Below, piece after piece: positions 9,378-43,400 of a DNA stretch of 64,000 nucleotides. Under the pieces are notes generated by a model. The model had not been told where the DNA came from, searched no databases, and saw only the letters and a list, made by a program, of their open reading frames with translations. The translations under genes and the position numbers were made by a program. Numbering within the stretch: position 1 is the stretch's first letter; every line of letters begins with the position of its first letter. This DNA comes from Vitrella brassicaformis CCMP3155 (taxonomy: Eukaryota; Protista; Chromerida): assembly GCA_001179505.1 (NCBI GenBank), contig CDMY01000385.1, forward strand, positions 124,001-188,000. The letters are read 5' to 3'.

Positions 9378-10441
9378 GTCCACACACACACACGGACAGA
9401 CGTGTTGGGTGGAGAGGAGGGAGGGGCAGTGGGCTAGTGGTGGGGAGGGAGGAGAGTGAGTGTGTGTGGCTGTCTTTCTTTCTGTTTGGCTGTTCGTTTG
9501 TCCGTCCATGTGTGGTGGCGGGATGGATAGGCATGGCCGACTGACTGACTGTCTCGTGCTTTGAATCGAACGGTGCTCCACTTGTACAATGGATCAACGA
9601 GTGAGTGATAGGCAGGCAGATCAGAGGGAGGCAGGCAGCCGTGGCTGCGGCAACACGCCTCGGGGCTGGGCTGGCTGCAGTCGGGTCGGCGTAGTTGAGG
9701 GGGCAGGGCCTCTTGTCGCCCGCCGTTTTTTCACGGCTGCCTGTGTGATTGATGTCTGTGTGCGCGTCTGTGTACCCTACCGAGGGCATTATTCATGTCG
9801 TGAATGTAATGAGTGTCCACTCAAGCTCTGCGGCTGACTTGATGTGGGGTAATCTAGGCACACTCACCGACCCGACCGACGTCTGAAGACACTGCACAGC
9901 ACACGAGTCTGTCTGTGCATTGGATTCAGACTCGGCCGGTGCGGTGAGTGCGTCTGAGTGAACCTCGTCGAGCGACTCGCGAGCCGATTGGTGCAGTGCA
10001 GTGCCTGTGGGAACGGTGTGCATGTGTGTACCCGACTGACTGACGCATGTCATGTGCACCTCTCTCCTGCCTACAACAAACGCCGTGCCTTCTTCGGATG
10101 TCATCGGAAGAAGGCGCGCCGCATGGTGGGGCTGGCAGAGAGGGGTCATGACATGCATGGCGCAGGCAGGTAGATCTGTTATGGCACGAACGACACGCAT
10201 TTGCACTGACACTCTAACAACTGTTTGACAAAGATCGCACAAACGGTAGTGCGGCGTTTTGGGTTTTGCCGAAGTTCCCCCACTGCAGCTCCCGGATCAT
10301 CACTCCGCCGCGAAGTTCCTGACGCAAAGCCACCCACCCACCCGTCACGTCATCCCGCCTACTGCGTGGGTAGAGAGGGAGTGAGGCGCCGCTGCATCCA
10401 TCCACCATCGGGCCGTCCCGTCCATCCATCCATCCGTCCAT

Positions 10442-13400
10442 ATGTACGCGCCCGAGGAGTACGGGTCGTACCGCAAGGATGACCGGGGATGCACCGACCT
10501 GTGCGGCCTCATCATGTTCATCTTCGCCGCGCTCCTGCTGGCGGGTTTGGCGGTGACGGCATACTCGGAGGGCGAGGTGGCCCGCCTCTACAAGGGCATC
10601 AACTACAACGGCCGGCTCTGCGGGCTGGACCATCCCGTGGAGGCCAAGCCCTACCTCTTCTGGCCCAAGTCGCCATCTAGCGGCGACATCGACCCATCCA
10701 CACCCCTGTGTGTCAAGAAATGCCCCACCGAGGACGACGCAAACAAGGCCGTCACCGTCAACTACCCCGAGAGGACCACCGTATACAACAACAAGACCAA
10801 AACGGTACGCCACGCCTCTCAACAGGCAGGCCAGGCCATTCATGTGTTGTGTGGCCACCGTTGATTGATCTCCCCCTCTCTCTCTCCTTCCCTCTCTGTG
10901 TGGGCTGGGCTTGGCTTGTGTGTATCATATGTTACGTGTGTGATCTTGTTTGTCAGACGAGCACGACGCAGACGCTGCTGCCGACCCCGGTGTACGCGAC
11001 CACTTTGGTGTTCCGTGCCTACTGCATGCCCGAGGACCCCGACCTGCGTGCAGCGGTGGAGCCGCAGTTCGCCACACACTTCCACCAGTTCCAGGCGGCC
11101 GTCGGCGGCATCGCCAGCTCATGGCCACTCATCCTGTCGGCCCTGCTGGCGGCGGCTCTGCTGTCGTTCGGATGGGGTCAGCTGATGCGTCTGGTGCCCA
11201 AGCCGATGATGTGGGGGTCAGTGGGGCTGGTGGCCGCGCTGCTTTTGGTCATCGGGGGGGCGCTGCTGTATGTGGGCTTCACGGGCGACGCCATCACCGA
11301 GTATATGGGGAATATCAGTGGGGACAACCAAGTCTGGGCGATCGTGGTGAGCACTCTGGCACGAACAGCACCTGGGCCATGGGGTGGCACATCCCCCTCT
11401 CTCTCTCTCTCTCTGTTTGTGTGTGTTCTCTTGGTCAGATTGGTGCGGTGCTTCTGCTGATCGCCGTCCTGTTCATCATCGTGATTGTGTTCGCGCAGCA
11501 GACGATGAACGTGGCCGTGGCGGTCATCGACGCCGCCGCAGACTGCGTCATGGACATCCCCATGATGGTCCTGGGACCGCTCATCACCTCAGCAGGTCGC
11601 ACACACAGACACACAGACAGACAGACAGACACACAGACAGACAGACAGCCACATACACGTGGACGAATCGTGTTGTGTTTGTTGTGTTTGGTGTGTGTGT
11701 GTGTGTGTGTTGCAGCGATGGTGGGCTGGGCGGTGCTGTGGATGGTGACCTTCCTCTACATTGTTAGCTCGGGAGAAGTCTACGGCAAAAAGGTCAGTCA
11801 CAACAAATCCACCACCAACGAACAAACGAGCGAATATCAGTCGTGCGGCATCGCATCGCACATCAGAGCCCTCTCGCCCTCTGTGTGTGGTGTGGTGTGG
11901 TGTGGTTGGTCAGATGGCGTTGGGTATGCAGGAGAATGGGGGCGCGGAGGTGGAGGGCCTTCACAGGGAGATACACTGGGACAGCAGAATGATCCTATTC
12001 GCCATGTGTGTAATCCAATCAATCGCAACACCACCACCGCCACACGCCACGCCCCCATCCCTCTCTCCCTTTCCCTTCTATCGGTGTCCTTGCGGTTCAC
12101 TCGTTTGTTCAGCCTATGGACGTTTGCCCTGTTCTGGGTCTTCGAGATGCTCGTGTCCTACACACAATTCGCCATCTCTTACGCCAGTCAGTCAACACAC
12201 CCACACACACACATACGCGCACACGCACACGCACACAGACACACACACCCTGGGTGCACCTGTACGACGCCTCCCTCCCTCCCTCCCTCCCTGCCTCCCT
12301 GCCTGCCTGCCTGTGCTACTTACTGTTGGTTCTGTCTGCAGCTGTGGTGTGGTACTACACCGAGCCGAATCACGTGACCGAGGAGCGAGACCCCGAGGGC
12401 TGGCCGCCCCTGGACGGTTTGAAGAACGGCATCGTGTACCATCTGGGGTCCATCGCCCTCGGGGCCCTCCTGGTCGGACTCACGCGACCCGTCCGCATAC
12501 TCTTCTCGTGGGCCAGCCAGAAACCACACCAGGGCAACCGAGTACAGACACAACTCTACAGAAGCTTCGGTAGGTAATGGGCCAGTGGCTGAGTGAGTGA
12601 GTGGGGGCTGTGTGGGGCGGGGGCGGGGGGAGGGAGGGAGAGTGATGGTGGGGTGTGTGTGTGTGCAGGTCAGTGTGTGGAGTGTTACCAGGCCAACATA
12701 GAGTGTCTGAGTTCTAACGCCTATATCGAGTTGGCCGTCTCGGGCTCTCACAACTTCATCACTGCCGCCAGAATCGCACTCAAGTCAGTCAGACACACAC
12801 ACACACACACATACACACACACGGACTGCTATCTATCTATCTGTGTGTGTGTGTGTGCGTGTGTGTTTCCAGCAAGGTGCTGACCTGCCAGACCAACATA
12901 GTCTTCCTCTACGGGGTGAGCGGACCGCACTGACTGACACTCACACACGTGTGTCGTGTTGTGTTGTGTGGTGTGGTGTGTTCCTACTGGATGGCCCACG
13001 GCAGATATCGACATTCATTTCCTACGTCGGTGCGGCGGCGGTGTCGCTGCTCGTCACCTACGTCTGCTGGGAGGTGGGTGGGGGCCTGGGGGCGGGCGGC
13101 GGTGACGTCACTGCACGCCCTTATTTGCATACACGTGTGTGTGTGTGTGTCAGGTCATGACGCGGGCGAATGTGTTCACCAGTCCCGACTCGGCCTACTG
13201 GGTGGAGTCCCCCGTCTTCCTCACAGTGGTGGGTGGGGGGTGGGGGGGTGAGCTGCTGCCCACTGCACTGAGACACACACGGACGCACACACACACTCAC
13301 TCACTCACACAGACAGACACAGCTCCGGTGCGTGAGTGTATTGTCCTGTCTGTCTTTGTGTGGTCGGCCTGAATGAATGGCAATGGCTGTGTTGTGTGCA

Positions 13401-19000: not shown

Positions 19001-19803
19001 CTGCTCTCCTTTGTGCTCACCTGGTACGTCACACACAGTCTCAGAGAGGCGCAACACGCGACCGCCACACACGCCTCTCTGTCTTTGTCTCTGTGTGTGG
19101 CGTCACACAGGCATGCGCAGCAGCTCCGCCACTGGGCCCGCGCGGCGTCCGACTCATGGTTCCTCACCGACGCCTTCGCCGATGACACCGACACCGCCCA
19201 CACCCCCAAGTGGGCCAGGTCGCTCCCACCATACGTCATCCTCTCACCAACGGACCACCACAGGCTCATCAAGACAGCCACTGCCGCCGTCCTGGGGTGT
19301 GTCCACGGGGACGCCAATACGCTGGTGGGCAGTCTGTCTCTGCCGGCGGTGCAGGTGGTATACCAGGCTGTGAGCAGGGTGCTCAGGAGGGCCGCCGGGA
19401 GACAGCCGAGGGAGGGGGAGGGGGATTCTGACAGTGACGAAGGGACTGCTGGTAGTGGTGGTGGTGTAGATAGGGACCATGATGCCAGGCTGCAGTCGAC
19501 GGCATTCCATGCAGAAGTGCTCAAGACTTTGCAGGTAGGTAGGTGATGTGTGTGATGCCGACAACAGACAGGACAGACCCCGGCCCAGAGAGACGGTAGG
19601 TATTGTGCGCGCGTGTGTGTCTGTGTGTGTGTGTGGGTGGGTGGGTGGGTGTTCAGGCTGTTGGTTCGTCAGGTGGTGGAAGGGGAAGAGGCGTGTTGGC
19701 TCGTGTGGAGACGGAGGTGCCGGTGGGATGCTTCTTTGTCGACCTGATGATAGATAGCTCCACACACCCAAGGTGCGGACGGACTGAACGACTGACTGAC
19801 TGA
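16075..19803 (+). CDS. Organellar (probably mitochondrial) helical-repeat RNA-binding protein with a C-terminal RAP-like motif
   Basis: Basic leader 'MQRRLMPLDAFRLTSRRLS'; degenerate ~37-aa repeats ('LSSTEIAVLVHHYARAG', 'WPAADIVMLVGALAKLEF', 'YKADKIALIANAMARAG', 'YNVQSFSLTLLAIARLG'); last exon 'ARVETEVPVGCFFVDLMI' resembles the start of a RAP domain. Long ORFs 16072-17886 and 17900-19546 are joined by an intron. Confidence 0.7.
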
Positions 19804-20350
19804 CTGACGAGCAGTTGGTGAGTGAGTGATTCGATCATTCATGAATGAATGAGCCATATGCATGCAGGCAGCAAAAATGGGTCGGTCGGTCGGTGGATCG
19901 GTGAGACAGACAGACACACAGACAGACAGGCAGACCAGCAGATGGATAGATAGATAGGACAAAGTAAGTGGAATGCATGACATGGAAGTCATCCTGACGT
20001 CCTCACTCACTTTCTCACTCACTCACTTGACGCAAAGCGACTGACTCATCTCATCAACCCATGCGGCCAGCGATAGAAAGACACACACACACACACACGC
20101 ATAGCATAGATACCGACAGACACACAGACACACAGTAGCAAAATTGTTTCATCACAATGATCACATCTCACACAATCATTCCATTCAAGCAATCTTTATG
20201 TATGTCATCCAGGAGAGGCAGCCGTTGGAAAAGCCTTCCCGCACTGCATCACAATGACGGGAAGCGGACCCTCCCTGCCTGTCTGCCTGTCTGCACGGCT
20301 GGCACACCACACCACACCCTCCCCCCCATCCCTCCCTCCCTCTGCCTCTC

Positions 20351-20994
20351 TCATGTGGTGGACTGCCTGGCGATTATGAAATAGGTGAGGATGGCAATGA
20401 TGGCCACCAGAATCAGCGGGATGATCCCACTCATCCCGCCACCGCCGGACGAGGCAGCCTGCACACGCGACAAATGGGATGCAACACACAAGTGAGTGCC
20501 GTCTGTGTGCCTGACGTACACACGGCTTTCTTTCTGTCTGACCTTCTTGGCCTTCTCGTCCTTCGGCACCACACAGCCGGTTGCAGTCTCCTCGTGCCCC
20601 TCGAGGACGCCGATCTCGTAGGGGACGGCCTGGTGCCTGGCGCTATCGCTGTGACCGATCTCCTCAAACTCCTCGCTTGTGTCCTGACCTGCACACACAC
20701 ACAGAGAGAGGGTGGAGTGTCTGTCTGTCTGTGTGTCCGGTGGGAGGGTTGATTTGTTGGGCTGGCTGCCTGGCTACCGGCGATGTTTGTGATGACTTCA
20801 GGTCCGCCCGGGTGGTCCGGGAGGAACTTAGTGATGTCGTAGACCTTGCCGTGAACAGCTATCCAGCAGTCGTCCTCGGTGTTGTGCTTGGCCATCTCCT
20901 CCTTGCTGATCACGCGCTGCTTGGCTGCTGGTGGGGCAGCCGCACCGCCTTCCTGCTGCTGCTGCTGCTGCTGCTGTGCGTCCGTCTCGCCCAT
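20351..20994 (-). CDS. CYB5: Cytochrome b5, tail-anchored, 3 exons
   Basis: 'EEMAKHNTEDDCWIAVHGKVYDITKFLPDHPGGPEVI...AGQDTSEEFEEIGHS' (HPGG and second heme His); C-terminal TM 'GIIPLILVAIIAILTYFII'. Confidence 0.95.
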
Positions 20995-21352
20995 CTTGCC
21001 GCTCTGCTCCTCTCCTGCACTGGAAAGAACCAACAGCCGCCAAAGTCAACAGATCTGCGCTTGGGTGGGTGAGGACTGCCCGTTGACTCGCGGAGAGGGC
21101 GAAAGACGAGCAGAGAGAGGCGGCCGGTGAAGAAGTTGCGATCCAGGTCAAGCTCGCATAAGCAGCAGGAGCCTTCCTTTCCCCTTTTGAACTTTGCGTG
21201 ACGTGAGGAGCGTCGAGAGGCAGGTTGACGCCTTTCGGGTCGATTCCAAAGGCCAGGGGGAAGCGAAGGCTGCAGGGCAGTGACAGAGGGAGAGCGTGTG
21301 AGGAGACTGGCCCGCAGAAGAGGTCTTTGCTCGCCGGCACAGAGCTTGTGTG

Positions 21353-22456
21353 ATGGGGTGAGTCTGCCACACGACACTTGAGGAAGGGAATGGGGAAATG
21401 GCTTGCTGAAGCCTGCCTGCCTGACATGAATCAATTGCCCGCTTCTCTATCTATCTCTGTGTGGTGGTGGATGGGATCGATGAGTGCAGGAATCAGGCGT
21501 CGGGTCTGAGTCCGTCTGAGCAGCGTGAGTTGGTCAAGGCGGCCAACTTCACAGAGAGGGACATCAAGCGGTTCTACAAGAGGTTCAGGGCGCTAGACAC
21601 CAACCAGAATGGGGAGCTCGACCCACACGAGCTGTTTGACGTGCCTGAAGTCGCCGAGGTCTGTGGGTGATGTGCACACGCAGACAGACAGCAGGAGAGG
21701 AGAGAAGGCTGGCTGGCTGGCTGGCTGACGAGTGATGGATGGATGGCCCTGATTGATTCCCCTTCCCCTTGCTGCCTTTGTCTGTCAGAATCCGCTGGTC
21801 AAGAGGGTGATATCCATCTTTGACACGGACTCTGACGGCAAGGTGTCGTTTGTCGAGTTCCTCGTGGGCCTCGGTACGTACGCCACCCACAGCCATCCAT
21901 CCATCTATCTATCTGTTGGCTTATCTTATGTATGTGGATTGGATGGCTGGGGCTGGATGGGTGTCGGTGTGGTGTATCTGTCTGTCTGTGTGTATCAGCC
22001 AAGTTGACTGCCGGGACGGACGAGAGTGAGAAGATCAAGTTTGCGTTTGAGGTGTACGACATCAACAAGGACGGCTACATCAGCAACGGGGAGCTCTTCC
22101 AGGTCATGAAGATGATGGTCGGCAACAACCTCACCGACCAACAGGTACCTACCTACCTTGTCACGCACACACACATCGGCACACACAAATCGCATGGTCC
22201 GCAGCCGGCAATGGGTCTCTATCTGTCTGTTTGTCTGTCTGTCTGTCTGTAGCTTCAGCAGTTGGTTGACAGGACGATGCTGCAGGCCGACATCGACGGG
22301 GACGGGATGATATCATATGCTGAATTCAAAAAGGTCGGAAGGCACGCCTCCTTGCCTGCCTGTGTGTCTTGACGAGCGAGGATGTGCGGTGTGCGTGTGT
22401 GTGTGCAGATGGTGAGTCACATCGACTTTGGGGAGAAGTTCAGATTAGAAGTCTGA
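21353..22456 (+). CDS. CNB1: Calcineurin B regulatory subunit (4 EF-hands), 6 exons including a 5-nt first coding exon ATGGG
   Basis: ATGGG|gtgagt (21353-21357) splices to ag|GAATCAG (21490), giving myristoylatable MGNQAS. EF-hands [36 protein letters not shown]; '[13 protein letters not shown]'. Confidence 0.93.
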
Positions 22457-33568: not shown

Positions 33569-34678
33569 CAGAGAGAGAGAGGGAGAGAGAGCATCACCTC
33601 GGCGAATGAAGAAGTCTTTCGTTGCTGTCACCCACCTTGTCCCTCAGGGTAGTCGGCACACACACAATTCTTAACCTCCAGGAACAGCTCATCGCCATTC
33701 GGGTAGTCTAACACGAAATCAACCCTGAGGGTCCAATACACAATCACACGATGACATACACAATCAAGCCTCGTCTCTGCTCCTTCCTGAGTGCTCAGGC
33801 ACTGACCTGGCCTTGCCGTGCGTCACTTGTGTCCTGAACGACGAGTAGCCCGCCAGCTCAGGGATCATATGCCGCTCCAACATCGTCTTGACCATCCTCT
33901 CGGCCAGCTGCGGGTGCGCACCCACCGACGCCACCTCGCCCATTGGGCGGGGCTCCTCGGCCAGCCATATCGTGTGGGACGTCTTGCCCTTCCCACTCGC
34001 AGACGGTGTCATCCTTACCTGGCTGCCCGGCACTATCATGCCCGCGCAGTCCAGACTTGGGCAATGGGCCTGCAGCGGGTCGGCTGACTCGTCGCAAGTA
34101 ACGTTGCCCATGGCGTCTTGTTCCAGGATGCGGACATCGGCAACGTAGGGCGTCTTGATGACTGCAGAGGGGCGCTTGACGATCCTCCCGGTCAGCAGAT
34201 CACCCAGGTCTAGCAGAGGCTCACCGCTGTCGCTGCCTGGCTGCAGTACTAATGCACCAGAGGCAGATGCAGCAGCAGAGGCAGCGGGTTGGTCTGTCGC
34301 TGCTCTCTTCTCTGCCGGTGGCAGCAACTCATGCTCATCGTCTACAGCAGCTGCGGCGGCTGGACCATCGTCTCGGTTCTTTCTCTTATTGCCGGCTGTT
34401 CTTTTCGGTGCCATGAGGTCAATGTCACCCAACGACAGGTCAACAACAGCAGCTGTCTTCAGCCGACTGAAGCCTCCAGCTGGCGGCAGAGCTAGGTGTC
34501 TAAGGGGTGCTGCGGTGCGGCGTCTGAATGGCAGAAACTGCTGGCGTGAAGAGAGGGATGAGGCGGCGCGGTACGTCGGACGGACCACCAGGAAGGATGC
34601 CGCTCGGAAGAGATGCAATACAACGAAGATAGTAGCTAGATCAGTGCTCCATCGCCTCCAATTGCGTGAGGCACCCAT
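33084..34678 (-). CDS. sfsA: SfsA-family (sugar fermentation stimulation protein) PD-(D/E)XK nuclease/DNA-binding protein with signal+transit-like N-terminus, 3 exons
   Basis: OB-fold part 'IVKRPS...PYVADV...AHCPSLDCAGMIVPG', 'VGAHPQLAERMV'; catalytic exon 'RVDFVLDYPNGDELFLEVKN'; 'AIFPHG...SDRAIKHAHEL...AAILFIVNRSD..QFRP...D.LFAQVLKRAHEAGVQLLAY'. Confidence 0.85.
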
Positions 34679-34752
34679 TCATTTTGAGTCGGCTTCAAGT
34701 TGAGCTCGCAGCCCCCATTCCGTGAAACCGCTCTCCCCCTTCCCGCCCTCCC

Positions 34753-35052
34753 NNNNNNNNNNNNNNNNNNNNNNNNNNNNNNNNNNNNNNNNNNNNNNNN
34801 NNNNNNNNNNNNNNNNNNNNNNNNNNNNNNNNNNNNNNNNNNNNNNNNNNNNNNNNNNNNNNNNNNNNNNNNNNNNNNNNNNNNNNNNNNNNNNNNNNNN
34901 NNNNNNNNNNNNNNNNNNNNNNNNNNNNNNNNNNNNNNNNNNNNNNNNNNNNNNNNNNNNNNNNNNNNNNNNNNNNNNNNNNNNNNNNNNNNNNNNNNNN
35001 NNNNNNNNNNNNNNNNNNNNNNNNNNNNNNNNNNNNNNNNNNNNNNNNNNNN
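34753..35052. other. Assembly gap (300 N)
   Basis: Run of 300 N between the divergent SfsA and repeat-protein genes. Confidence 0.99.
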
Positions 35053-35149
35053 CAACGAGTGCCGTGACGATCTTGTCGCTCATCTCTTGTACACACCAAC
35101 GCTCTCCTCAGGCTTGTATTAGCTTTCCTTCCCCATCCATAAGCACACA

Positions 35150-37423
35150 ATGTCGTCGCAGATTCAGTCGAACGTGGTGCGGAGCGGCGTCCGCCCCGGC
35201 CACCGGCCGCAGAGCAACGATGGGGAAGTCAACATCCCCATCAGGACGGCCACCAACGAGAGCGAGACCGCCGTTGGACAACTGATGGACGTACGCCAGA
35301 CAGAGACACACAAACGGACGTGACAGACACCCACACGAGAGTGACTGTCGGGTGATGGGGGTCCGTTGTTTCGCCGCGTGTGTGTTCCCAGAAGGTAGGC
35401 CTCAGCAAGCGCAGCCCCCAGGAGATCCAAGAACGTCGCGAGGCCAACCTGCACCGCGCTGAAACACTCGAGGTATGCCTCCCTCCCCACCTCCAGAGCT
35501 CTTCAGCCCCACCCACTCATTTTCGCCCACTCTTTCTCTTCCTGTCGTCTGTCTGTCTGTCTGTCTGTCTGCAGAAGTTGCGCACCGAGGGCATCAAGGA
35601 CAAGAATGAGGGCAAGCTCGACGCAGCGGAGGAGCGTCGCAAGAACGAGATGGCCAAGAAGGCTGAGCACGAGAAGAAGAAGGGCGACAAGCGGCAGCAG
35701 GTCATCGAGCGGGCCAAGGAACTCGAGAGACAGAAGCAGGAGGAGATGAAGAAGAAGCAGGCCGGCAAGCTAGATGAAGCAGAGCAGCGGAGAAAGAAGC
35801 AGCTCGAGGACAAGGCTAAGCGCATGGCGGAGCTCGCTGCCACCGAGGAGCACGTCCAACGCGCGGCTGAGATTCAGCAAAAAAACGTCGAACAGATCGT
35901 TTCCAAGACGGCAGGTAAGTGTACGGGTGGGTGAGTCAGAGAGTGGCACGATCGTGACATCTGTCTGTCTGTCTGTCTGTCTGTCGGTGTGTGGTTCGCA
36001 CAGGGAAGCTGGATGCCGCCGAACAGCGCCGCCTGGACCATCAGGCTCAAGTGGCCAAGCGCATGGCCGAGCTAGCCGACACCGAGGCGCAGGTCAAGAA
36101 GGCAGAGGCAATGGAGCAGGCACGCAAGGAGGACATCATGGTGGGCACTCACCAGCGCAGAAAGCTGACCGACCAACTATGTGTGGGCACCCGTATCTCG
36201 TGTCTCCTTCTGTCTGTGAATCAATCAATGTGTCTGCAGAGTCGTCAGTATCGATTCGATGAGGCCGAGAAGAGACGGCTGGAGCACCTCGAGAAGGAGA
36301 AGGAGCGCATGCGTGAGCTCGGGCAGACGGAAGAGGTCGAGAAACGAGCCAAGGAGATCGAGGAAATGAAGAAGAAGGCCATCATCGTAATTAAAACGCA
36401 CTCTCGATCTGACGTTGATGCCGTATCCGGTTCATTCTGCCCTCCTACCTGTGTGTCTGTGTGCGTGTGCAGGACAAGACGGACGGCAAGCTGGATGCAG
36501 CCGAGCAGCGCCGCATCGAGCACCAGCGAGAGGTTTCTCGCAGAATGAGTCAGCTGGCCGATACCACCGCGCAAGTGCAAAAGGCCGAGGCTCTCGAGGA
36601 GGCCCGCAAGGAGGAAATCCTGGTATCGCAGCCTTTCGCCACAGACACACACACAAAGAGGGAGAGAGGGAGAGAGGGAGAGGGAGAGAGGGAGAGAGAG
36701 GGGGAAGGTCTGTGTCATGCCCATCAACGTAGCGACACAGACACGTTTGTGTGTTTGTGTGTGTGTTGTGATCCTGATCCTGCAGGCAAAGGCGGGTCGG
36801 TTCAGCGAGGCAGAGAAACGGCGCCTGGAGTTCCTCGAGAAGGAGAAGGAGCGCATGCGAGAGCTCGGCCAGACCGAAGAAGTGGAGAAGAGGGCCAAGG
36901 AGATCGAGGAAATGATGAAGAGGGCCATCATTGTACACACACGCACACAGACACAGACATCCCACCCGCGGCAAGCTTCGAATGGCTTGTTTGTCCATCC
37001 CTGTGCGCATCTCATCTGCAGGAGAAGACCGACGGCAAGTTGGATCAGGCTGAGGCGCGCAGACAGTCAATTCTCGACGAGCGCAGAAGACGCATGTCCG
37101 AGCTGGGCGCCACCGATGAACAAGTGCAGCGGTAATCAATAAATCCACTCACAACACGGTGTTGGGCGAGACTGACACGCACTGATGTGCATGTTGAAGA
37201 CACATTCTTCATACCCTCTATGATCTAACGCCATCTTACCTTACCATGGCTGCGCTGCCTTCCCTGTTCGCGTCTGTTGTTTCTTTAATTCAGTGCTGGT
37301 GAGATAGACCAGGCCCGCCGGTCATCGATAGCCGCCAAAACCGAGCAGAAGCAGGCCAAGGCGGAGGAGACAAGAGAGATCTACAACCAACTCATGCACC
37401 GCGGATCCAAGGAACACATGTAA
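35150..37423 (+). CDS. Charged alpha-helical protein with seven 49-51-aa tandem repeats (stathmin-like, putative tubulin-binding), 9 exons
   Basis: Repeat heads GKLDAAEERR, GKLDEAEQRR, GKLDAAEQRR, YRFDEAEKRR, GKLDAAEQRR, GRFSEAEKRR, GKLDQAEARR. Exons 36240-36386, 36473-36622 and 36786-36932 are 49/50/49 codons with phase-0 GT-AG introns. Last exon 37294-37423 ends 'RGSKEHM*'. Confidence 0.85.
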
Positions 37424-38123
37424 TGACGTAGAAAGGCACTGTACTGAGTACAGTACGTGTGGTCGATTGACAGGATGCAACACACATACACACACACGTG
37501 GGGCGGGGGGGAGGGGAGGATCCATGTCTGCGGTGCGACACCGAGGGCGATAGTCACATAGCGATAGTGAGAGAATTTGTTGTACAGCGCGGCTGCCTGA
37601 GTGCCATCTACATCTATCTGCTGTTGTCGTCTTTTTCTTTTCCTTTCCTTTCCTTTGCCTTTTCCTCTGGCCGGCGTGGCCTTGGGGGGGTGAGGTGTGC
37701 AGTCAGCAGACAAGAGAGAGAAGGGTGTGGTCTGGTCAAAAGAAGTGTCAATTGTTGCGCCATTTGCTGCCGCTTGTCTATCTGTCTGCTTGTCTGTCTG
37801 TCTGTCTGCCTGGGTGTGTGTGTGAGTCTCCGACAGGATGCATGTGTAATTCGCTGTAGTGTAGTGGTTAGCAAGTCACAAAAAAAGACTGTGCAAAACG
37901 AAGCGATAGTGGCCACGCGACACTCACACACTCTCACCCCCTGACACACTGCCTACATGATCATGAATTGAAGATGCCGACCTTCAAAGTCTCTTTGCGC
38001 CTCCTTTCAACGCATGTGAACCCATCAAAAAGTTGCAAAAAGTCCGAGACATTAACCGATTCATAAAGTCACACCTGGGCGATGCCAATTGGGGCCGAGT
38101 GTGGGGCGGGGGGGGGGGGGGGG

Positions 38124-38423
38124 NNNNNNNNNNNNNNNNNNNNNNNNNNNNNNNNNNNNNNNNNNNNNNNNNNNNNNNNNNNNNNNNNNNNNNNNNNNNN
38201 NNNNNNNNNNNNNNNNNNNNNNNNNNNNNNNNNNNNNNNNNNNNNNNNNNNNNNNNNNNNNNNNNNNNNNNNNNNNNNNNNNNNNNNNNNNNNNNNNNNN
38301 NNNNNNNNNNNNNNNNNNNNNNNNNNNNNNNNNNNNNNNNNNNNNNNNNNNNNNNNNNNNNNNNNNNNNNNNNNNNNNNNNNNNNNNNNNNNNNNNNNNN
38401 NNNNNNNNNNNNNNNNNNNNNNN
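38124..38423. other. Assembly gap (300 N)
   Basis: Run of 300 N flanked on both sides by G homopolymer. Confidence 0.99.
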
Positions 38424-38480
38424 CGGGGGGGGGGGCTCGCCTTTCCTTCGGTACTCACACCTGGAGGCTTTTACACATCC

Positions 38481-40465: not shown

Positions 40466-43400
40466 CTACATGTCCATTGCTGCCGGCGCTGCTGCGGCTC
40501 CGTTGGCTCCTTCCTCCGCTGCTGTGTCGCCCCCGTCTACGGCCATTGGCATGGCTACCTGGGTGTCGTCATCCCCACGGCTGCCAGAGCAGAGCACCGC
40601 CTCAACCACCTCCCAGAACAAAGGACCAGCAGGGGACTGGAATCTCTTCAACGCACATGCTATCTGCCACACAAGTACAGATGAGATGCAGAATCAGGCA
40701 ACCTCTGGGTACACCAACCATCCCCTTGTGTGCTCTTGTTTGGGTGTGTGGCTCTTTCCGACCTCCATAATGTCGTCCAGGAATGGCGTCAGCCACAGGG
40801 TGGTGTCCTTCTGCTGCAGCAGCTGCACCAGGCAGTGCAGCCCGATGGCCACGTACCGGCTCGACGTGATGCTCTCCACATCCCCCGCACGCACACTCAC
40901 ACTCACACCCGTGTCCAAGCTGCTGCTGAATGTGCTGGAAGGGTCGTCCACCAAGGGGATAGAGATGATCGGCTGCAGCTCCGACCGCAGCACACCCACT
41001 ATCGGCCGGACCACCAGCTCCCTGCCCGATGACGGCTGCGGGGCGTCGGCTGCAGCAGCAGCAGCTGCTGCTGCTGGTGGTGGTGGTGGTTGGCCGGTGC
41101 TGGTGGTGCTGGTCACCACCAGCTGCTTCAGGACGGCGGGCAGGTGGTCACTCACCACCAGACACATCAGCGTCAAGGCGGCTGCATCGCACCCACACAA
41201 AGAATAAAGAAAAAGGCACTGCAGGCCAGATGTGTGTGTGTCTGTGCCTCTGTCTGACGTACCGTCTCTGCATTGGTTAATCAGTAGGATGAACTCGTGC
41301 GTCTGTTTGTTGGCCCCAGATGTGGATGACAGCGACGGGCTGCCCCCCAGATAGGGTGCGAGCAGCCACGGGAGCGACTGCTTGAGCACGGGAAGCAGCA
41401 TGGGAGACCACACCTGTCAGTCAATGTCATGCCGACAACGACATACAGGAGGACCACAAACACGGGTCTGTTTGGCTGGGCAGGTTAGGTTACACAAACA
41501 CACATACCCACCTCTGTATAAGTGGTCGACACGAGTTGCGTCATGGTGTCCAATGCGGCCTTGGCCACCCCCAGGCACCGCTTGAGCCACTCGAGCCTCT
41601 CGCTGGTCACCATGCACATCCACCCACCAGACCCACCACCCCGACCACCCCCAAGCCCGCCNNNNNNNNNNNNNNNNNNNNNNNNNNNNNNNNNNNNNNN
41701 NNNNNNNNNNNNNNNNNNNNNNNNNNNNNNNNNNNNNNNNNNNNNNNNNNNNNNNNNNNNNNNNNNNNNNNNNNNNNNNNNNNNNNNNNNNNNNNNNNNN
41801 NNNNNNNNNNNNNNNNNNNNNNNNNNNNNNNNNNNNNNNNNNNNNNNNNNNNNNNNNNNNNNNNNNNNNNNNNNNNNNNNNNNNNNNNNNNNNNNNNNNN
41901 NNNNNNNNNNNNNNNNNNNNNNNNNNNNNNNNNNNNNNNNNNNNNNNNNNNNNNNNNNNNNCAGACCCACCACCCCGACCACCCCCAAGCCCGCCCCCAC
42001 CCCCACCCTCCGCCGCCTCCTTGCCCATCTGCGCCAACACGCTCGCCTTCTCACGCAGCACATCCGGGTACACCCTCGTGTTGGCGTCCATGACCCGCAG
42101 CACCCTCTCGCCACTTTGTCTCACCAGCCACTCGCCCCCCTCCTTGCCAGCACCCTCAGCCCGCCCCAGCAGCACCAGCAGGGTGCGGATGCAGATGTCA
42201 GTGGCCATTGCCACGTTGACGAGGAAGGAGGTTGGCAGGGCGTGTGGCGGCAGGCTGAGCGCCATGGTGGCCTCCCACACCTGCAGGACGTCGAAGAGGG
42301 CCGACACGAAGCCGTAGTGGATGCCCTCGCCAGCCATGAGCATGTCCTCCCCTTCCGCGTTGTTGTCGTCTGACGCTCGGGCGAGCGAGTCGTAGCGCGA
42401 CAGCCGGCTGGCCCTCTCGACGATGTCATCATTGTTCTTTGAGCCGCGGTCGTCCTCCTTGTCGATGACGATGCTTGCTGCACCCGCTGCTGCGGCTGTG
42501 GGCTGGTCACCACCCCCTCCGGCCCCTGCAGCGATGTTGTCGTATGATGGCATCCGTGAGTGTGATTGGGAGGGGGGCATCTGGAGGGGGACTGGGATAG
42601 GGAGAGGGGGCTGGATGGGCGGCGCGGTGCCGATGACGATGTTGAGGTTGTCGTCGTGCTGCAGCAGGGCCGCCAGCACGTTGGGCAGGTGGTAGAGGAA
42701 CGACGCTGCACGGTGCAGCTGAGAGGGGCTGACGGCTGGGGGGCTGTCGGCTTCGGCTGTGGTGGTGTTGTCGCCGTCGCTTGTTCTGGTGCGCTTGAGT
42801 TCTTCGGCGTCGGCGTGGTCCTTGAGCAGGGAGAGGGTGTGCTGGCAGACCTCGCTCAGGATCGCGCTCAGGATGCTCATAAGTGACGGCAGCTACACCC
42901 ACACACACAAACACACACACACAAGGACCGTCAGAAAGGTCTTTCCTCCCGCCCACCTTTGACAAGGAGGCCGTCTTCTTGGCGCCGTTCCCGGCTCGGG
43001 CAGCAGCAGCGGCTGCAGCAGTGGTGGTGGTTGTGGTGGTTGTGTCGCACGCCGTCTTGTAGAGGGCGTTGAGTGCTGCGGTAATGGGGTTGACGCGCTC
43101 GGTGGATGTCAGCCACTGGTGTGGGGGGGTTCGTACGTCACGGTGCCGCTGACACAAGGTACGGGCGATGCGACGAAGCTCTGGTTCACACACACACACA
43201 CACACACACATTCAGACAGGCAGCCACGTGTGTGTGTGTGGTGGTGTGTGAGTGTGTCCCTGCCTGCTACCTGTGTCCAAGGCGTCCGCTTCGTTCTCCC
43301 GCTGCCGCTGCCGCTGCAACTGCTGCTGCAACTGCAGCGCCTCAGCCCACGGATGACCGTGAAGCTGAAAATACCCTGGTTGCGGCTGCGGCTGCGGCTG

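Follow-up and report, generated by a model that had tools for sequence, protein, structure and literature searches.

A Vitrella gene encoding a predicted long helix of seven tandem repeats with a possible stathmin-like tubulin period

The window analyzed here, a 64,000-nucleotide stretch of contig CDMY01000385.1 (positions 124,001 to 188,000, forward strand, assembly GCA_001179505.1) of the chromerid alga Vitrella brassicaformis CCMP3155, carries at 35150-37423 of its + strand a gene for which nine predicted exons join in frame. The eight introns are 86-163 nt long and all of the GT-AG type, each opening with gt and closing with cag. The resulting coding sequence of 1383 nt gives a predicted product of 460 aa, and its exons are the following:

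35150..35290, + strand: exon 1, 47 aa with the start codon ATG at 35150, a non-repeat N-terminus; donor GAC/gtacgc.
35392..35472, + strand: exon 2, 27 aa, containing SPQEIQERREA, the start of the charged helix; acceptor cag/AAG, donor GAG/gtatgc, phase 0.
35575..35914, + strand: exon 3, with repeat 1 (35602-35754), repeat 2 (35755-35904) and the opening residues of repeat 3.
36004..36140, + strand: exon 4, repeat 3, A-type.
36240..36386, + strand: exon 5, repeat 4, B-type, 49 aa.
36473..36622, + strand: exon 6, repeat 5, A-type, 50 aa.
36786..36932, + strand: exon 7, repeat 6, B-type, 49 aa.
37022..37131, + strand: exon 8, the opening 36 residues of repeat 7, A-type; donor CG/gtaatc, phase 2.
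37294..37423, + strand: exon 9, the rest of repeat 7 and a degenerate eighth motif, AEETR (aa 441), with the stop codon TAA at 37421-37423; acceptor cag/T restores the frame.

The nine exons were spliced computationally for the measurement of period and composition, and the similarity searches were run with single exons or with database proteins. The 460-aa product is rich in glutamate (17%), lysine (12%), arginine (11.5%) and alanine (11%); E, K and R together make up 41% and all charged residues 45%, and its pI is 9.1. Runs of N that represent assembly gaps lie close on both flanks (about 34740-35053 and about 38120-38440), leaving ~97 nt of known sequence 5' of the ATG. Microsatellites of the (TGTC)n/(CTGT)n kind are found just 5' of several intron acceptors (35542-35571, 35960-35985) and again 3' of the gene (37775-37812), and intron 6 contains a (AGAGGGAG)n tract at 36657-36700; being common to unrelated introns, these microsatellites produce weak spurious similarity between them. 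A 304-aa open frame on the - strand (33767-34678) weakly resembles the N-terminal OB domain of SfsA, with a score under the cut-off (PF17746, E 0.041), and probably belongs to an adjacent spliced gene.

A regular-expression search of the predicted product for the AE-x-RR core places seven anchors at aa 92, 143, 193, 242, 292, 341 and 391, followed by the degenerate eighth at aa 441. These positions reproduce exactly the spacing of 51, 50, 49, 50, 49, 50 and 50 residues read in an initial annotation of this DNA, and the two strings quoted there, SPQEIQERREA and GKLDAAEERRKNE, are both found in the product. The BLOSUM62 autocorrelation peaks at lag 99 (2.02), with further peaks at lag 149 (1.00) and lag 50 (0.97), the maximum over 1000 shuffles being 0.51. 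In a gapless alignment the repeats share pairwise identities of 20-84% and fall into two types, an A-type that starts with G-K-L-D (repeats 2, 3, 5 and 7) and a B-type that starts with R-F-[DS]-E-A-E-K-R-R (repeats 4 and 6); the alternation of the two over most of the array accounts for the 99-residue super-period. Because exons 4-8 carry one repeat each, the array appears to have grown by exon duplication, from which the seven repeats of 49-51 residues and the degenerate eighth would all have come.

AlphaFold2, run with no alignment, predicts one continuous helix for exon 3 (residues 2-112, pLDDT 90.7) and likewise for 2.6 repeats of a Vitrella paralog (CEM18573.1 residues 80-212; helix at residues 2-132, pLDDT 93), and the predicted helix passes straight through the K-x-x-G-K repeat junctions. 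At 0.15 nm per residue, one repeat corresponds to ~7.5 nm and ~400 helical residues to ~60 nm, and these models suggest that the 460-aa product is essentially one ~60-nm alpha-helix. The helix model found no counterpart in the PDB with Foldseek, an outcome to be expected of an isolated helix. At 3.5-3.6 residues the hydropathy moment amounts to 0.15-0.18, compared with a shuffle mean of 0.24 and a 95th percentile of 0.35; a classical coiled coil is unlikely for a helix that, with a moment under the shuffle mean, has no continuous heptad signal.

The distribution of this family appears extremely narrow. An exhaustive phmmer search with exon 3 against 1.84 billion representative proteins returned a single match, CEM18573.1, from the same Vitrella brassicaformis CCMP3155. 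Word searches with exon 3 and with CEM18573.1 residues 1-250 brought nothing further, the window gene's own product was not among the phmmer and word-search matches in the protein collections, and of the 599 pattern matches to the A-type repeat alignment that a metagenome scan produced, none was confirmed. Relatives among the alveolates, for which the initial annotation had proposed a search, did not emerge: phmmer, word searches and metagenome scan found no orthologue in other alveolates or in any other organism and yielded the Vitrella paralog only. As far as these searches reach, the family therefore appears confined to Vitrella.

The paralog locus (CDMY01000503.1 of GCA_001179505.1, about 41533-42867) is a partial duplicate of window positions 35150-36505, spanning exon 1 to early exon 6 with introns included, at 92.9% identity in exons (92% for exon 1) and 91.0% in introns. 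Compared with the window gene, its exon 1 is longer by a 12-nt insertion and its exon 3 lacks 1 nt; a deletion of 38 nt has taken away the acceptor of exon 5 together with the beginning of that exon, and the 3' ends of the two copies are unrelated. CEM18573.1 is annotated at 386 aa by a gene model that skips repeat 1, and the pairwise dN/dS between the two genes is 0.34. From these features the paralog is probably a decaying or chimeric copy. A neighbouring gene (19064-22043 of the extracted locus, in which the duplicate occupies 10001-11335) encodes a protein with a DNAI3_N domain (axonemal dynein intermediate chain); its position beside the paralog is probably a coincidence.

Comparisons within the array allow the constraint on the repeats to be assessed. 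Exons 5 and 7 share 84% amino-acid identity (dN 0.14, dS 1.17, dN/dS 0.12), exons 4 and 6 give a dN/dS of 0.16, with 69% identity between repeats 3 and 5, and exons 6 and 8 a dN/dS of 0.27; over the repeat pairs, dS is saturated at 1.2-1.9 and dN/dS ranges from 0.12 to 0.27. The matching introns 4 and 6 show no alignability above shuffles. Saturated synonymous sites, low dN/dS and unalignable introns together argue that the repeats are old and constrained, and suggest maintenance by purifying selection on the protein. As judged from the predicted exon chain, the locus thus appears to hold a real, constrained and uncharacterised repeat-protein gene. A gene-prediction artefact, or a decaying gene without a functional protein, would agree with a sole relative that is a broken partial duplicate, with a locus that sits between assembly gaps and with the absence of the gene's own product from the protein collections searched; it is nevertheless very improbable, given eight canonical introns that restore a single frame and a perfect period, and internal-repeat dN/dS values that remain at 0.12-0.27 although synonymous sites are saturated.

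The resemblance to stathmin was assessed in profile comparisons with 24,736 Pfam families; for Stathmin (PF00836) the cut-off, or gathering score, is 24.7 bits. This family ranks first for exon 3 (E 0.027), whose residues 10-98 lie on profile positions 46-134, collinear and with no net gaps, as well as for exon 4, i.e., repeat 3 (profile positions 50-89, E 0.034), for repeat 2 by itself (E 0.032, against E 0.33 for repeat 1 by itself) and for repeat 3 of the paralog (E 0.0038). The best Stathmin score, E 1.9e-4 and 21.9 bits over two stretches, comes from repeats 2+3 of the paralog and is ~100x better than that of the next family. The matching repeats all map to one region of the profile, positions 43-89, and competing charged-helix families give E > 2. 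The comparison of single repeats with Pfam Stathmin that the initial annotation had suggested thus places this family first for repeat 2, exon 4 and paralog repeat 3, but every piece scores below the gathering score: 21.9 (paralog repeats 2+3), 20.1 and 17.6, and 14.6-14.9 bits for the window pieces.

This resemblance is unevenly spread over the product. When a B-type repeat is added to a piece, the Stathmin score falls to 10-12 bits, and the full-length paralog gives no match; the B-type repeat had been considered as a counterpart of stathmin's second repeat and was rejected, as adding it lowered the score. None of the B-type repeats matches Stathmin, nor do three of the seven repeats overall, and exons 5-9 are without a Stathmin match (exon 6 at E<=10). 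Exons 1 and 2 have no Pfam match, exon 2 being too short a query for one, and neither matches Stathmin profile positions 1-45, the N-terminal cap and phospho-regulatory part, at E<=10, which for such short queries is a weak test. In an Atlas language-model feature search, 17 of the 30 clusters nearest to exon 3 are Stathmin, and with repeats 3-4 Stathmin is again the sole named family, weakly. Against the PDB, a profile of the repeats puts 21 stathmin chains at the top (E 0.07-0.28), the best being the idealised R1 unit (E 0.067). A single-sequence control, however, yields matches to AfTrax (0.067), spectrin and troponin I that are just as good by E-value as those to stathmin, and because of this equal noise the PDB matches are discounted as support. 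The literature consulted contains nothing linking stathmin to chromerids or apicomplexans.

The initial annotation had read the product as stathmin-like. Stathmin as top family for A-type pieces, the 49-51-aa period and the predicted long helix speak for this, while the sub-cut-off scores, the failure to detect a cap and the PDB matches at noise level speak against it. Sequence kinship with stathmin is accordingly best described as possible but unproven, at somewhat less than an even chance. The product may be one that works like stathmin and is not filed as a PF00836 member, because its scores stay under the Pfam cut-off and the cap feature is not found. The match in period (49-51 aa in Vitrella versus 51 aa per tubulin in engineered stathmin-like domains, where R1 has 87 aa and R4 240 aa) is a coincidence in its own right, one that makes a tubulin-related function more likely, and the product is plausibly a multi-tubulin or microtubule binder. 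Since no orthologues are seen, an origin from the same ancestor as stathmin could be reconciled with this distribution only through extreme divergence, numerous losses or gene transfer.

Two other readings of the helix have to be weighed against this one. It may be a spacer with no relation to tubulin, formed as a single charged alpha-helix or as a weak coiled coil; its likeness to stathmin would then be compositional or convergent, arising from an E/K/R/A-rich helix, and its 49-50-aa period would reflect seven heptads per duplicated exon. We regard this as a serious possibility, though clearly short of probable. Such a helix would explain why all similarity scores are sub-threshold and fall as sequence is added, and why the single-sequence PDB search gives noise (AfTrax, spectrin, troponin I) as good as stathmin; B-type repeats of exactly 49 aa (7 heptads), the E+K+R content of 41%, the monomeric straight helix of the AlphaFold2 model and the orphan status of the gene all fit it. 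The heptad periodicity that it implies is, however, not significant (moment 0.15-0.18 versus a shuffle mean of 0.24), and a mere spacer would not need repeat positions strongly conserved at saturated dS. Nor does it account for Stathmin specifically topping 24,736 Pfam families for several pieces when other charged-helix families stay at E > 2, or for a period that fits the tubulin dimer.

The product may also be a microtubule-lattice protein, which in flagellar or subpellicular microtubules would be either an inner protein or an outer MAP. Filamentous MIPs and Toxoplasma SPM1 are microtubule binders that repeat in step with the tubulin lattice, and a Vitrella analogue with an origin separate from stathmin would show 8-nm (repeat) and 16-nm (A-B pair) periodicity. 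The 99-aa A-B super-period, the strongest autocorrelation peak, agrees with such a protein, as do the ~7.5 nm spanned by ~50 helical residues, a basic pI of 9.1 that suits the acidic tubulin surface, and the long, straight predicted helix. It is made unlikely by the PDB searches with the repeat profile and with single sequences, in which no solved axonemal or apicomplexan MIP chain matched at E<=10, and by the wide conservation of core MIPs, for which an orthologue would be expected in other flagellated alveolates, where none was found.

The reading that we prefer, held tentatively and at somewhat less than an even chance, is that of a real, Vitrella-restricted gene in which each repeat acts as a stathmin-like tubulin-binding module. 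Each such module would lie along one alpha/beta-tubulin heterodimer (8 nm), and the whole protein would align ~seven dimers in an end-to-end row. Stathmin itself caps alpha-tubulin with its N-terminal hairpin and keeps two dimers in a curved row by means of its long helix, which occupies a site on the outer tubulin surface that overlaps kinesin's; a cap-less stathmin helix still binds tubulin, blocks assembly and permits curved assemblies (PMC7491153). Because no capping hairpin is detected in the Vitrella product, it could serve as a soluble multi-tubulin scaffold, a store or template that holds curved tubulin; alternatively, in flagellar or cortical microtubules, it could lie along a protofilament and serve as an 8/16-nm ruler. 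In its strongest form, which we consider improbable, the proposal is that of a stathmin-type scaffold without precedent in nature in having seven to eight tubulin sites, and without precedent among myzozoans as well: a cap-less helix that either serves as template for curved oligomers of ~seven dimers, about half of a tubulin ring, or measures out the protofilament at 8/16 nm. Relatives of the Vitrella lineage build curved tubulin fibres, namely the conoid and pseudoconoid.

The initial annotation's description of stathmins as mainly animal is roughly right, since stathmin-like domains are almost only opisthokont, but two ciliate proteins also belong here and none is found in Chlamydomonas (Deng et al. 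2024, PMC11238091). Given this distribution, a chromerid member with seven repeats would be new. That it stands so isolated could be explained by an ancient stathmin of the alveolates, of which ciliates have two, or by capture from the coral host with later exon amplification. The oldest stathmins have been argued to act at cilia (Deng et al. 2024, PMC11238091).

The textbook example of how tubulin dimers are held in a defined, curved, head-to-tail array is the stathmin-like domain. If the preferred reading is true, a natural seven-site version in a free-living apicomplexan relative would extend the range of the family, offer a ready-made long tubulin scaffold for structural work and indicate that cells building flagella, cortical microtubules and conoid-like structures have an as yet unstudied means of storing or shaping tubulin. 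Should the product be a charged helix only, it would still provide a useful warning that motif and period together can mimic stathmin below family thresholds.

Among known systems, ER/K helices and periodic microtubule binders such as filamentous MIPs and Toxoplasma SPM1 share with the Vitrella product a charged, extended and repetitive helix. Compared with a typical ER/K helix, however, its charge content appears lower and its repeat positions appear more conserved, and no solved MIP chain resembles its repeats in sequence. That stathmin-like domains occur beyond animals, including in Alveolata, is shown by STMND1 and the two ciliate homologues of stathmin (Stylonychia, Oxytricha; PMC11238091), but as described these proteins are short, dominated by a single stathmin-like domain and recognised by standard searches.

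A further likeness is that to stathmin and RB3-SLD themselves (T2R complex, e.g., 1SA0, 4I4T), which have a long, uninterrupted, amphipathic charged helix with repeats about 50-51 residues apart, as predicted for Vitrella. Likewise, the K-L-[DE]-A-A-E-x-R-R start of the Vitrella repeats and the pattern downstream of it align gaplessly to PF00836 profile positions 43-89. Stathmin has two repeats, whereas the Vitrella product has seven to eight and differs further in the lack of a detectable N-terminal beta-hairpin cap or regulatory region, in its basic pI, in its sub-cut-off scores and in its occurrence in a chromerid alga, with no orthologues.

Drosophila stathmin isoforms, with up to four repeats, show that repeat numbers above two and a variable tubulin stoichiometry occur in nature; unlike the Vitrella product, they are bona fide PF00836 members of an animal, with fewer repeats. 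Their extra tubulin-binding repeats are attributed to Lachkar et al. 2010, as far as that work is reported in PMC3694009. The engineered stathmin-like domains R1-R4 (4F6R, 4F61), which bind between one and four tubulins (work of Mignot et al. 2012, as reviewed in PMC7491153), are artificial, have <=4 units and keep the N-terminal cap, and the Vitrella profile matches them at E 0.067 only. In their architecture, however, they correspond to what is proposed here for Vitrella, as modular helices in which each extra 51-residue unit adds one tubulin.
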